Shown: positions 11,313-18,100 of the stretch, in pieces | Layout: each line of letters starts with the position of its first letter | How positions within the stretch are numbered: the stretch's first letter is position 1 | NCBI RefSeq assembly: GCF_000400465.1 | Contig: NW_008806287.1 | Coordinates: 60,001 to 92,000, forward strand | Origin: Wallemia ichthyophaga EXF-994 | Taxonomy: Eukaryota; Fungi; Basidiomycota | DNA length: 32,000 nucleotides | Direction: 5' to 3' | Notes under the pieces: generated by a model | What the model saw: the letters and a program-made list of their open reading frames with translations, nothing else | Databases searched by the model: none | Told to the model about the DNA's origin: nothing | Made by a program: the position numbers and the translations under genes

Positions 11313-12480
11313 TCATAGTGGCAACAAAGGGAATGATTGAGTCGATGCAGATTTTGAAGTTGCGTATGAGTTTGTGATGGATTCAGATTGTCGGGTGTTT
11401 TTGTCATTGCTCTTGAGTCTCGCTTTCGGGGGAAGAAAAACGGTAAGCGACAACCTGCGCTCTTTTTGCGATAGCTGTGACTGTGTAGGTGGTATGAGCG
11501 GATCAGATGATGGTGTTTGGTTGGTGGTGATTTGCGTGTTGTGTGAATATGACTGTGAATTTGAATTTGACTGTATTTGTGACTGCGTCATACTCACGCA
11601 CCCACTAAACACCCTCAACACATCAGCTTGTATTAGAAAGGTTAAAAAAGCAACTAAACCAGTCGCAGCAAATGCTAACGTGGAACCATTCTCGAATCCT
11701 CGAAATTTTATAGTCGACTTGAGTAGAATCACAAGCGAGGTTACGCTGTAGTATAAAAATAGAAATATTCTACTTATCAGCTGGATGTCAATGGATAATC
11801 TAAACTTCAATAAACCTATTTGAGATAAACGTAACTTGAATAGTAAGACACCTGTCCATAAAGCCATGATCATTAGGAAAAACATAATGAGAGTAGCAGT
11901 TAAAACGGTTGCCAAGTTGAGCTGCGCGTTTAACACCACACAAAAGTAAGGTGTGCGTACAACAAGATCAGTATTTTTGAGTGAAGTGATTAAATGTGCA
12001 ATAAAGAAGGGTATACCAAATAGCCAAGGGACGAGTATGAGGATGGGACTGTCAATGTACTCCTTTAAATAGAAAGTTGAAGTTGCTTTTGCTGTGTTCA
12101 CAGTTGACCAGATACGTATGGTTACGATCAACGAAGAAGAGCTATTCATAATCATACCAACACCTCTGACTGTTGCGTTGATAACCCTTATCGATGTCGG
12201 TATATCTTCAGTGTGACTTGACTTATGTCCTGTCCAGAATAAAATAGCATCAAACCATAGAATTATTGAAAATAGCGCGTAAAATTGTAATAATAGTAGA
12301 TTTCGTTTGATTCTTTTTGAGTAGATTGTTGCAATGAACAAGAACAGATGACCTATGCTACCTTTATCATGTTAGCGGGATTAATACCAACCAGAAATTA
12401 CACAAACCTGCTACAAGAATACCGTAATAAGCATTGAGATAACGTTCATGTGCAATATCAAATACACCGTGATTGCTCAT
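11313..12480 (-). CDS. Orphan seven-transmembrane GPCR-like membrane protein, 373 aa
   Basis: complement(join(11313..12361,12408..12480)). Seven hydrophobic segments counted by eye, a Cys in the loop after helix 4 (PYFCVV) and a Ser/Thr/Gln-rich C-tail. Confidence 0.7.
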
Positions 12481-13857: not shown

Positions 13858-14407
13858 TCAGTTAATCGGCTTTATCTTAAAGTGGAGAGTGATTAAACTA
13901 AAAATTAAACATTTAAGATCTTGAATGAGGTAGTAGAAAACGCGTAAACCTTCTGGGTCCTCGGAGTCTTGTACTTCAACCAAAGAACCCAGTTTACACG
14001 TTTGAAATGATATGTGATTGTTATCTAGCTTTATTTCTAACTCTTGTGTACCATTAACGTTCTTCTTTGGCCAATTTACGTCATTTTCCCTTAGTATTTC
14101 TGCCTCCTCAACGACCTTCTTCAGTTGATTAGCAAGTAAGCCACCTAGCCACAACTCCTTTCTAATCAAGTCATCATTTCTGTAATTTGAGTTGTTGGCG
14201 TATCTCAGCCTTCCTCTGGTGTATTCAAATTCTAAAAATTCGTGTCCGTATTTTCCACTATGGCCTGAGTAGTAGCGCAGATAGAAAGGGCTATGAACGT
14301 GTGTATTAGAAGTTGAATAACATTGCAACTAACACGCACTCATGTAAAAGCTCTGTAGACCTATAAACCTTATTAGAATATTCTCAATTTCAACGCTAGA
14401 CTAACAT
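13858..14407 (-). CDS. MAGO: Mago nashi, exon junction complex core subunit, 151 aa
   Basis: complement(join(13858..14290,14340..14360,14406..14407)) gives [30 protein letters not shown]...[14 protein letters not shown]...LHFKIKPIN. Identity is certain; the split-ATG 5' model is my reconstruction. Confidence 0.95.
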
Positions 14408-14441
14408 GATTGATTGTGGTTATTACCTATTATCAACAACC

Positions 14442-15129
14442 ATGTTTAGACATATAAATAAAAATATTCATAAATCCACTCCGAATCTTTTAACCCGTGG
14501 AAATGCGTGGGTTTACCTATGTATCCACACACACATACTCACCCACTCCACCCAGCAACTTCCCAAGAATTTTACAACCAATCCAATACGACGACCAGCC
14601 ATCCACTAACAATCTCTACAACGACATTCATAACGCTCCCATTTCCTTCAAATCCCCTGTAAATTTACCAAAGACACACAACATCCCGATCGCTACCCTT
14701 CAACTGAAAGCTCACTCAACAGATAACTTGGATTTCTTCGCTGACTTTGCACAAAGATCTGCTTACCATTTGGGAATCGTTCTCACTGGCCCTGTGCCCC
14801 TTCCAACCACCCACCAACGCTATTCCGTTCTCAAATCCCCTTTCGTACATAAAAAGTCTCAGGAAATTTTTGAAAAACGTACACACGGCAGACTTATTAA
14901 AGTTTGGGATTCTGACGAGCATGTTGTGAAGAGATGGATCGCTTACCTGGATAGTCATTCTATGTCTGGAGTTCGGATGAAATTTGAACTTAATCAATAC
15001 CTGAAATTGAACTTTGGTGATGCTTTACCGTCAATTGCCAATGACTCTCTTAGATCTGATGATATTAAACATTCAGCTCAATCTCTACAGCATTCTATTA
15101 TTGAAAATCTTCACTCTGAGCACAAATAA
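14442..15129 (+). CDS. RSM10: Mitochondrial ribosomal protein uS10m, 212 aa
   Basis: join(14442..14506,14556..15129). Presequence-like start MFRHINKNIHK, then LDFFADFAQRSAYHLGI..TGPVPLPT...VLKSPFVHKKSQEIFEKRTHGRLIKVWD. Confidence 0.93.
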
Positions 15130-15191: not shown

Positions 15192-18100
15192 TCACTCAAT
15201 CAATGTCTGATCTTTCTTCATATCCTCAGGCAACATCTCAGCCATAGATGGTCTACGCTTCGCCATTGATGCTCCTGTGCCTTTACCACCTTTACCCTCT
15301 CCGTCATACTCATCGTTGGCCGGTCTAGACAGTCTGCGTCTATCCCCATCCGGTACCTTCTCATTAGGGTTCAGTATCGTTCCATCCTGCTTGACTGTAT
15401 CGTTTAGTGACATCTCACTCATAGACGCTCTCTTTATTCCCGTCAGTCCTGTCATTGATGGTCTGCTTTTGCGTCTTGTCATGGAGTTGCTGCGAGATTG
15501 TGGAGGTGATGCTATATTTTCGCGTACTATAACGCAATTAGTTTATTATCCACAACGAATGAAACCACAACTCACAAGTCGCATCTGCTTTAGCTTCGTC
15601 ATTCAGCGCATTCGACATTCTCCTCCCCTTCATCTGTTCATTGGGCAAACCAGCGAAATCGGAAGGCTTCCCATCCTGCATCTTGGCTCTATTTTCTACG
15701 AGGGTGTTATCGACAGTGAGCTCCTTAGGAAGTGATTGCGACATCATCCTCGGTTTCTCCCTATCGGGTAAAACACCATGTTCGATCTCATCCTCATCGT
15801 CAATTGCCGAATCTCCATACTGCATATACTCATATCTGTTAACAGGTTTGAACTTTTCAATAGGGTTCACTTCCTGTCCGGAGAGCGACATAGATCTCTC
15901 TTTCATTGACATAGATTGAGCCGTGGCAAAACCTGTGTCTTCACGCTCAGCGCGTGGCGGTTTAGTGATATTCTCAAGTTTTGTAGCATCCATCGATGCG
16001 CGCTTATTGAGTGACATGGACATAGCTGGGTAATCGTCGTGGTAATGTGGTCTCAAGTCGCTACCCGCAGTGAGAGGGTAGTCTGATAAAGTAGCTGACT
16101 CTCCCACTGCATTGATTGACGCGCGAGATCCTCTTCTCATAGCTGCCTCTCGAGCCATCTCGCCATCAGCTTCTGGCGCGATAACTGGTTCTCTAATAGC
16201 AGAATAGTTGGTCGTGTCTCTTGCTGAAGCGTTAGTCAAAGAGTCCGCCATATCCATTCTATCATATCCTTCAACCTCAGGTCCAAGTAGGCTGGTACGG
16301 TCAACTTGCGGCTTAGTTATGTTCTCGCGCAGTGTAGCATCCACGACTGAAGTCTGCGTAAGTGAGTCCGCCATAGATTTTCTGCGTCCTCCTTTCGCAG
16401 CTGCACTGGCTGGGTCGTCATGAGAGTTTCGACGACTGCCACCCATACTTGATGGACCACTGAATGGGTTTTCGAGCTGCTTAAGTACGTCACCACGCAG
16501 CTCCGGGTGTTGCTCTACTTCAGCCCTAAATGCATCACGTGCTCCGACGGGGTGCTGCACATAAACACCACCACTTGTAGTAGTCACATAGTTGTTCGCT
16601 TGCATTGACTCCTTGCGCTGTCTAGGCGTTTGGAAGAATTGCTGCGCCGCTGCTGAGGGTCCGTCGCTGTGTAATTGATCATTTGCAACTACTGCCTTCA
16701 AGTCAAAGAGCGCCTTGGTTGCTTCTAGCTGCTCATTTATGTACTTGACCATCGCTTCCTTCACCGTGCTAGCCACACGCTCTTGCACATAAGGCCAGAA
16801 TGTCTTATAGATGTTCGCTTTGATTCCTTCCCCTCCATTCACATCGAATTTAATATCATTGATCTTAATATCGAACCCTTCGAAGTTGCCAGTAGCGGTG
16901 AATTTGAGTAGCACATCAGCATCATATTCAAGATCCCCTGTGCCTTCATCGGATACCCCAACAATGCTCTTCTGTGAATACTGGTAGTTGAGTCCCTTAG
17001 CAAAGAACTTCAAGCCACGCATAACCGCGGTGACGTTGGTGGATGGGTTGAATGAATCCCTCTGCAAGAAAGATATATTCGAGTGAGAGTCGAGTGAAAA
17101 GTCCTGAGGAACCATTGTCGATAGAACCAAATTGATGTTAGAGAAAACATACTTAAAGTCATCATCCTCCCCTTCAAACTTGTCGAGCTGTACATTGATA
17201 AAGTCCTTGGTGGCCTGTCTGGCTATTTCAACAAGTGTCTTACCATACGGAGCATACTGTCTCAAACTCGAAATCGCACGCTGGACACGTGCTATTCTTG
17301 AGTTACCCCTAATAGCATCGGAAAGCTTTCCGAACTCATACGCTAACGCGTTAGATGGCAATTTTTCACCCACGACTGGTTTGAAGCGGTTGGCAATTAT
17401 ACCAACTCTCGTTGTACAGTTTGTTGGTATGTAAGAGTAACCAAGTGAATGAGTCTCAACAGCTGGTTCACCACTTAGTTTAGAATCAATTGCAGAGTTG
17501 AGAAGGGCGGCAAAAGAATCTGAGACATCAGCCTTGTTCTGCTCAAGTGGCTCTGCAATCGCTGAACGAATAATAGATGGAGCCTCGGTCAAAACTTGCT
17601 CAAACCCAATGATAAACTCTCCAAGTGAATATATGGCTGGTGCAATTTGCGAACCTGTGAGCATTTGAAGTATGTTTCTAAGCACGAGGAAGGAGGAGCG
17701 CAGTTGAGAGGATTGATTGCCACCTGCAAGAGCATCCAACAGGACAAAGACGAGATTACGACGTAAGTCAGTCGATAAGTCCAATAAAGTGGTCAAAGGC
17801 TCAAGAGCTGAAAGGAACAGAGAGTGGAATTCTTTATCTTGGGCGATTGAGTGGAGTGATTGGTCGAGATTGGAGATATGTGATGAGAGGGGGTACTTTG
17901 AATAGAATAACTGACCAGCATTCTTGAGAAGACCAGTGAAATGATCGAGGGCTACAACAATTTTGGCCTTATCGACGATAGATTTGCGTTCGAATGACGT
18001 CATCAAGATAGCTGTGATGATATTTTAACGGGTTGAATAAAGTTCAATTAAAGAACTCACCTGTAATCTCAGACAAAGCACCTTTGAAACCTTTTAAACA

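Follow-up and report, generated by a model that had tools for sequence, protein, structure and literature searches.

In the mago nashi gene of Wallemia ichthyophaga, a short intron of the ordinary U2 type very probably separates the first two bases of the start codon from the third, with a micro-exon of 21 nt and a second short intron following directly. The gene lies on the minus strand of the window, by which we mean the whole stretch of 32,000 nucleotides that was analysed, and comparison of this sequence with related loci gives us high confidence in the following gene model and its predicted junctions (positions are those of the window; here and below, a caret marks an exon–intron boundary):

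14406..14407, minus strand: end of mago exon 1, ...ccacaatcaatcAT, with the AT that opens the start codon; AT^GT is kept in loci L001, L005, L006 and L017
14361..14405, minus strand: mago intron 1, 45 nt, GTTAGTCTAGCGTTGAAATTGAGAATATTCTAATAAGGTTTATAG, phase 2 inside codon 1
14340..14360, minus strand: mago micro-exon GTCTACAGAGCTTTTACATGA, 21 nt, G TCT ACA GAG CTT TTA CAT GA
14291..14339, minus strand: mago intron 2, 49 nt, GTGCGTGTTAGTTGCAATGTTATTCAACTTCTAATACACACGTTCATAG, phase 2 in Asp8
13858..14290, minus strand: mago main exon (exon 3), CCCTTTCTATCTGCGCTACTAC..., C CCT TTC TAT ... ATT AAC TGA, with the stop codon at 13860-13858

The AT, the 45-nt intron, the micro-exon and the 49-nt intron had been described in a first-pass annotation of this DNA, and the letters are all present at these coordinates on the minus strand. 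Both introns pass the sequence criteria for the U2-type GT-AG class (GT donor, YAG acceptor, CTRAY 10-20 nt before the acceptor, genome-typical length). Intron 1 has a GTTAGT donor, the branch site TTCTAATA (CTAAT at 14376-14372, its branch A lying 12 nt before the AG) and a TAG acceptor, and intron 2 has a GTGCGT donor, again the branch site TTCTAATA (CTAAT at 14309-14305) and a TAG acceptor. Their sizes of 45 and 49 nt fit the mean intron length of 55-61 nt for the genus (PMC3849046). Counting against the model, the T at position -1 of the first donor is suboptimal for U1 pairing, although this base is imposed by the ATG. GC content is 42.4%, and the standard genetic code applies, since CTG is found at conserved Leu positions.

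The ATG takes its G from the micro-exon, which also encodes S T E L L H (codons 2-7) and opens the Asp8 codon with its initial two bases. In the pre-mRNA, AU would end a very short first exon; removal of intron 1 would join this AU to the G of the micro-exon, creating the sole AUG in frame with the Mago open reading frame, and removal of intron 2 would join GA to C to give Asp8, leading into the conserved DPFYLRYY beta-strand. The initiator is the only Met in the window Mago, and the N-terminal peptide would be expected to be (Ac-)STELLHDPFYLR. Upstream, the frame of exon 1 meets a TAA 5 codons before the AT, with four sense codons and no ATG between them, and the 5′ end of exon 1 (the transcription start site) is probably within about 33 nt of the AT, given the presence of an upstream ATG and the divergent start codon of a ribosomal protein S10 gene at 14441-14444.

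Joined, the three exonic pieces encode 151 amino acids, MSTELLHDPFYLRYY...HFKIKPIN. The Pfam family Mago_nashi (PF02792) matches this predicted protein with 230 bits against a cut-off of 27 (E 1e-68), the alignment running over residues 10-150 and profile positions 1-142 of 142, that is, the full length of the profile. A homology search returned 2620 matches, among which the closest proteins are all from Wallemia, with identities to the window Mago of 93% for a Logan assembly, 88% for W. hederae and 78% for W. mellicola, the last two being the best named matches (mago nashi). Over the 360 aligned bases of the mago 5′ region, two further Logan assemblies (L010 and L011) show no difference from the window. 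These relationships put the window on the W. hederae / W. ichthyophaga side of the genus. Judged by its predicted protein, the gene is mago nashi, which encodes a core exon junction complex (EJC) subunit.

To place the split start codon in the genus, orthologous loci were fetched and the same gene model was built in each (L001, L005, L006, L012 and L017/L018), with the following result:

Window: AT^GTTAGT (45 nt) TAG^, micro-exon, GA^GTGCGT (49 nt) TAG^C CCT, giving MSTELLHDPF
L006 (Logan assembly): AT^GTGAGT (47 nt) AAG^, G TCA ACA AGT CTA TTA CAA GA^GTTAGT (43 nt) CAG^T CCG, giving MSTSLLQDPF
L005 (W. hederae): AT^GTGGGT (42 nt) TAG^, G TCG ACA GAG TTG CTG CAA GA^GTCAGT (47 nt) CAG^C CCC, giving MSTELLQDPF
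L012 (metagenome; the contig begins at the acceptor): TAG^, G TCC ACA GAG TTG CTA CAA GA^GTCAGT...CAG^C CCT, giving STELLQDPF
L001 (W. mellicola): AT^GTGAGT (54 nt) CAG^, G TCA GGT GAA TTA TTA AAA GAT AAT TTC, without intron 2, giving MSGELLKDNF
L017/L018 (W. mellicola-like): AT^GTGAGT ... CAG^, G TCA GGC GAA ..., giving MSGELL

The layout AT^GTNNGT...AG^GTC is thus shared by five other Wallemia loci (L001, L005, L006, L017 and L018). An AT^GTNNGT placed 35-70 nt upstream of the fixed acceptor arises in 1.2-2% of shuffles per upstream region, and it is present in all four Wallemia lineages that were shuffle-tested, as well as in a fifth (L017/L018). Spliced models of the window and three relatives are all 151 amino acids long and start with M-S-(T/G)-(E/S)-L-L-x-D, and in the window, L006, L005 and L012 alike the micro-exon measures exactly 21 nt. 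All four TCN synonyms (TCT, TCA, TCG and TCC) encode its Ser among the lineages, and its Leu codons likewise vary synonymously (CTT/CTA/TTG/TTA and TTA/CTG/CTA) while the peptide S-(T/G)-(E/S)-L-L-x-D is kept. Identity between species is 71-81% in the micro-exon and 75-78% in exon 3. In the case of intron 1 it is 60-62%, versus 56-58% for shuffled sequence, such that the boundaries are conserved and the interior has drifted.

In the unspliced DNA of all four species, the frame of the micro-exon runs upstream into a stop inside intron 1, and that of exon 1 into a stop 1-11 sense codons before the AT, in both cases with no ATG. Taken together, the synonymous variation, the exon-like identity, the ancestral peptide (see below) and the lack of an alternative start make a codon that ends in the first G of the micro-exon hard to escape. 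The split AT^G and the MSTELLHDPFYLRYY N-terminus put forward in the first-pass annotation are therefore strongly supported, as predictions, by conservation across species. The position of intron 2 is kept in L006, L005 and L012 and is absent in the W. mellicola group (L001 and L017). We note that W. mellicola mago has a 3′ intron of its own between YYL and IQD (L001, 3736-3788; GTGGGT...CTAG), and that this YYL^IQD intron is absent from the window, L005 and L006, which shows that introns turn over within the genus.

Outside the genus, annotated Mago proteins were mapped to their genomic loci in Cryptococcus, Pleurotus and Calocera (Agaricomycotina) and in Cystobasidium (Pucciniomycotina), and the start alone was read directly in Mixia. 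The five orthologues are 65-76% identical and share the N-terminal peptide with Wallemia, but in every one of them (5/5) the ATG is contiguous, whereas that of Wallemia is split. Mago of Cryptococcus neoformans starts with MSTEDLLKDKFYLRYY from a contiguous ATG, which makes the micro-exon peptide ancestral, and that of Pleurotus starts with MSAPEKDPFYLRYY. The Cryptococcus, Pleurotus and Calocera genes have 6-8 introns each and that of Cystobasidium has 5, none of them at either Wallemia 5′ position, and the first intron of all four falls inside FYLRYY. Because the ATG is uninterrupted in five other basidiomycetes, the idea of an intron ancestrally present in the start codon is rejected, and among the basidiomycetes sampled the start-codon intron is, on this comparison of sequences, specific to Wallemia. 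The comparison of intron positions in related fungi proposed in the first-pass annotation thus gives an AT^GT...AG^G kept across Wallemia and a contiguous ATG elsewhere. The position would have arisen in the Wallemia stem lineage, and would have been maintained since failed splicing would abolish an essential protein. For evolutionary studies, Wallemia mago offers an intron placed inside a start codon at a dated, lineage-specific position, and the gene itself has lost every intron position shared by the other basidiomycetes.

None of the Agaricomycotina mago intron positions is shared with Wallemia. The Cryptococcus, Pleurotus and Calocera genes have in common a micro-exon of their own, of 6 nt, in the RYY motif (TTACTA, ATACTA and GTATTA, respectively):

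L007 (Cryptococcus), 1102-1107: 6-nt RYY micro-exon
L008 (Pleurotus), 1089-1094: 6-nt RYY micro-exon
L009 (Calocera), 1091-1096: 6-nt RYY micro-exon

All of the public Wallemia Mago models that we examined (P0001, P0002, P0003, P0057, P0121 and P0123) have a wrong 5′ end. The error is an antisense extension in P0003 (the W. mellicola GenBank model), a truncation in P0057, reading on into intron 1 in P0002 and a start within intron 2 in the Logan open reading frames. P0003 had nevertheless independently picked the same GT-AG boundaries (..LLER^MSGELLKDNFYLRYY; ER^MSGELLKD), and then extended its reading frame upstream, as no ATG was available. An exact look-up of the spliced 151-residue proteins of four lineages in a collection of 15 billion proteins, which includes RNA-seq assemblies, gave no match. 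A homology search with the N-terminal 74 amino acids retrieved no Wallemia-like protein carrying the spliced N-terminus; its only Wallemia-like match, P0123, is a genomic open reading frame fragment that runs into an intron, and the short metagenomic and metatranscriptomic Mago proteins among the homology matches are not from Wallemia. The value of the present model lies chiefly in correcting the annotation and in providing an example of intron evolution and, as gene predictors are defeated by the split ATG, the gene is a clear test case for annotation pipelines.

Translation from another start codon is hardly credible, whether from position 14343, where an ATG combined with a GTGTTA donor would give MSAPFY, or from a longer upstream coding exon that ends in AT, as in P0003. 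It is true that ATG AGT GC^GTGTTA..TAG^C CCT is in frame, and that P0003 places 47 extra residues upstream of MSGELL. However, the ATG at 14343 exists in the window species only, through a CAA-to-CAT change (Gln to His) where the relatives read CAAGA^GT, and GTGTTA has neither the G at +5 nor the T at +6 that every Wallemia donor defined here possesses (GTTAGT, GTGCGT, GTGGGT, GTGAGT, GTAGGT, GTCAGT, GTGTGT and GTCGGT). This model, which the first-pass annotation had named as the alternative to its own, would also fail to account for the synonymous-site conservation seen in the micro-exon, and can in effect be discarded. The extension in P0003 crosses the conserved first coding exon of the S10 gene in antisense and is itself unconserved, and any upstream coding exon would face the in-frame stops described above in all four species.

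With the split start codon retained, there is also a choice of donors for intron 2. In the window, this intron opens with tandem in-frame 5′ splice sites (14328-14339, minus strand), GTGCGT at 14339 and GTTAGT at 14333-14328, 6 nt apart. Use of the downstream GTTAGT, in the main or a minor isoform, would swap Asp8 for Glu-Cys-Val (+2 residues) and yield a protein of 153 amino acids (..HECVPFY..). This is unlikely, even though the two donors are mutually in frame, GTTAGT is the donor hexamer of both window intron 1 and L006 intron 2, and window intron 2 exceeds that of L006 by exactly 6 nt, as if GTGCGT had been inserted before an ancestral donor. Against it, GTGCGT fits the GTNNGT pattern of every Wallemia donor defined here, and Asp8 is shared by the Wallemia, Cryptococcus, Pleurotus, Calocera and Cystobasidium proteins without exception. 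The upstream GTGCGT is therefore the favoured prediction for the donor of window intron 2, since it alone keeps the conserved Asp and the 151-residue length.

The mago gene sits in an exceptionally compact locus, between two neighbours:

14442-14506, plus strand: exon 1 of a divergent mitochondrial-type ribosomal protein S10 gene, ATG at 14442-14444, followed by an intron at 14507-14555 (49 nt, GTGGGT..CAG)
13833-13763, minus strand: exon 1 of a downstream BAR-domain gene, ATG at 13833-13831, followed by its first intron at 13762-13717 (46 nt)

The S10 N-terminus, ML(N/S)R..RG(R/N)A^NFP, and its GC^GT donor are kept in four species, and the S10 protein has 211 amino acids, as in the W. hederae annotation. 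The S10 ATG and the mago AT stand head-to-head at a distance of 34 nt (40 nt in L006, 42 nt in L005 and 24 nt in L001). On the other side, the BAR N-terminus, MDK..NKSIFNQLQAAR^EKFGAVDEADI, is kept in L006 and L005, and the mago stop codon is separated from the BAR ATG by 24 nt (19, 28 and 5 nt in relatives). It follows from this compactness that mago exon 1 is tiny or else the 5′ ends of mago and S10 overlap, that the promoter of each of these two genes lies inside the 5′ exons and introns of the other, and that the 3′ end of mago lies inside the BAR gene. The mago 5′ introns may persist partly as non-coding room for the promoter of the partner gene, and transcription of mago and the BAR gene could be overlapping or polycistronic. 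From the mago stop codon to the first BAR intron the distance is about 95 nt; a mago mRNA that extends past this intron would have an intron in its 3′UTR.

When the split start codon is considered as a possible point of regulation, the extent to which intron 1 is retained would respond, for instance, to salt stress or to the abundance of EJC or Mago, such that Mago is autoregulated via the presence of its start codon and retained transcripts translate an open reading frame of 1-7 codons before being degraded by nonsense-mediated decay (NMD). We regard this as quite improbable. The window does translate, as the first-pass annotation stated, to MLV and a stop when intron 1 is retained (MLV-stop, M-stop, MWVASNL-stop and M-stop in four lineages), and no other in-frame AUG is present. 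Intron retention is the commonest mode of alternative splicing in W. ichthyophaga and is often salinity-specific, with 15% of genes alternatively spliced, mostly by intron retention, and half of those at one salinity only (PMC3849046). There are precedents in plant Barentsz, which is autoregulated via an intron (PMC3711448), and in the 3′UTR introns of Neurospora (Zhang & Sachs 2015, as cited in PMC7746235), and the EJC is able to mask adjacent splice sites (PMC8184009 and PMC6224609). However, short retention reading frames are automatic here, since AT and the G of the donor make an ATG, and GTGA or AT-rich introns soon stop, and the protein of any gene with a coding intron is equally, and trivially, gated. 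Beyond its splice signals intron 1 is unconserved (identity of 0.60-0.62, versus 0.56-0.58 shuffled), the RNA spanning the 5′ splice site and the AUG folds no differently from shuffles in four species (z of -0.98 to +0.97 for the mago 5′ region), and the consensus-like GTGAGT donor in two lineages, together with good branch sites, argues that no weak intron is conserved. The first-pass annotation, which had labelled a feedback switch as inference, is thus supported by conservation in its structural reading. Its functional reading, a splicing gate for Mago output, has no support here: neither the intron interior nor an RNA structure is conserved, and intron 1 has shuffled-level identity, ordinary folding and ordinary splice signals. 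The arrangement does not look like a dedicated switch, and we infer that both mago introns are spliced constitutively. Regulated retention of intron 1, if true, would raise the biological interest of the gene, as Mago belongs to the complex that marks spliced junctions.

The canonical EJC site lies about 24 nt upstream of a splice junction. With a micro-exon of 21 nt, the -24 position for junction 2 falls on the AU^G junction of the spliced mRNA and, were intron 2 excised before intron 1, it would coincide with the acceptor (3′ splice site) of the latter. A high level of EJC (Mago) may therefore mask this splice site, or the start codon, and so lower Mago synthesis; by a second route, a read-through mago mRNA with the first BAR intron in its 3′UTR may be a target of EJC-dependent NMD. 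If true, the masking would be negative feedback at the level of the start codon in an EJC subunit. We nonetheless consider EJC feedback on Mago, whether via the micro-exon geometry or via a read-through 3′UTR intron, highly improbable; the -24 geometry is not conserved across the genus, as W. mellicola is without intron 2.

Returning to the start codon split by a presumably constitutively spliced intron, Wallemia mago belongs to a known and rare class. Introns that interrupt the start codon itself, in phase 1 or 2 of codon 1, are present but “relatively rare” across eukaryotes, and in the same survey of near-start introns those of phase 0 that immediately follow the ATG are in strong excess, with over-representation in fungi, animals and plants (Nielsen & Wernersson 2006, PMC1626468). 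Like the start-codon-disrupting introns of that survey, the predicted Wallemia intron is a spliceosomal intron inside the ATG, with an initiator that would exist only in the spliced mRNA; it differs from the surveyed class in lying in a specific EJC gene, in being conserved across a genus and absent from five other basidiomycetes, and in being paired with a 21-nt micro-exon. The phase-0 “start-codon introns” (PMC1626468) resemble it in their extreme 5′ position and in a first coding exon just a few bases long, but they keep an unspliced ATG in frame with exon 1, whereas the unspliced AT of mago reads, with the G of the donor, into the intron. A literature phrase search for intron-interrupted start codons returned organelle or phage papers only, or nothing. 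What is new here is the EJC core subunit, the position fixed across the genus and the pairing with a micro-exon.

A further likeness, to EJC/NMD autoregulation, lies in the dependence of an EJC component on the splicing of its own transcript, as seen for plant Barentsz and for SMG7 with its 3′UTR introns (PMC3711448), and Neurospora has EJC-dependent NMD via 3′UTR introns (Zhang & Sachs 2015, cited in PMC7746235). In the known EJC/NMD circuits, introns downstream of the stop codon trigger NMD, whereas the Wallemia mago introns lie at the 5′ end. The Neurospora targets reportedly include eif4a3 and y14.

As for other elements in the window, a recursive splice site at the AG^GTC found in all lineages was considered and rejected, the GT being imposed by the Met-Ser codons (G+TCN) and being without the +5 G and +6 T that all real Wallemia donors have. 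A scan of the window for Rfam families and tRNAs gave none, and the mago introns are too short to host snoRNAs. Two long open reading frames on the minus strand, at 15538-18006 (822 amino acids) and 11313-12341 (342 amino acids), have no Pfam match at E<=0.001. Finally, a motif ACAATCA stands 3-9 nt upstream of the AT, in otherwise unconserved sequence, at 14411-14417 (minus strand) in the window, at about 2905-2911 in L006 and at about 2987-2993 in L005. It is conserved in these three lineages, with none seen in W. mellicola, and might be an initiator or transcription start site element, or a shared element of a bidirectional promoter.
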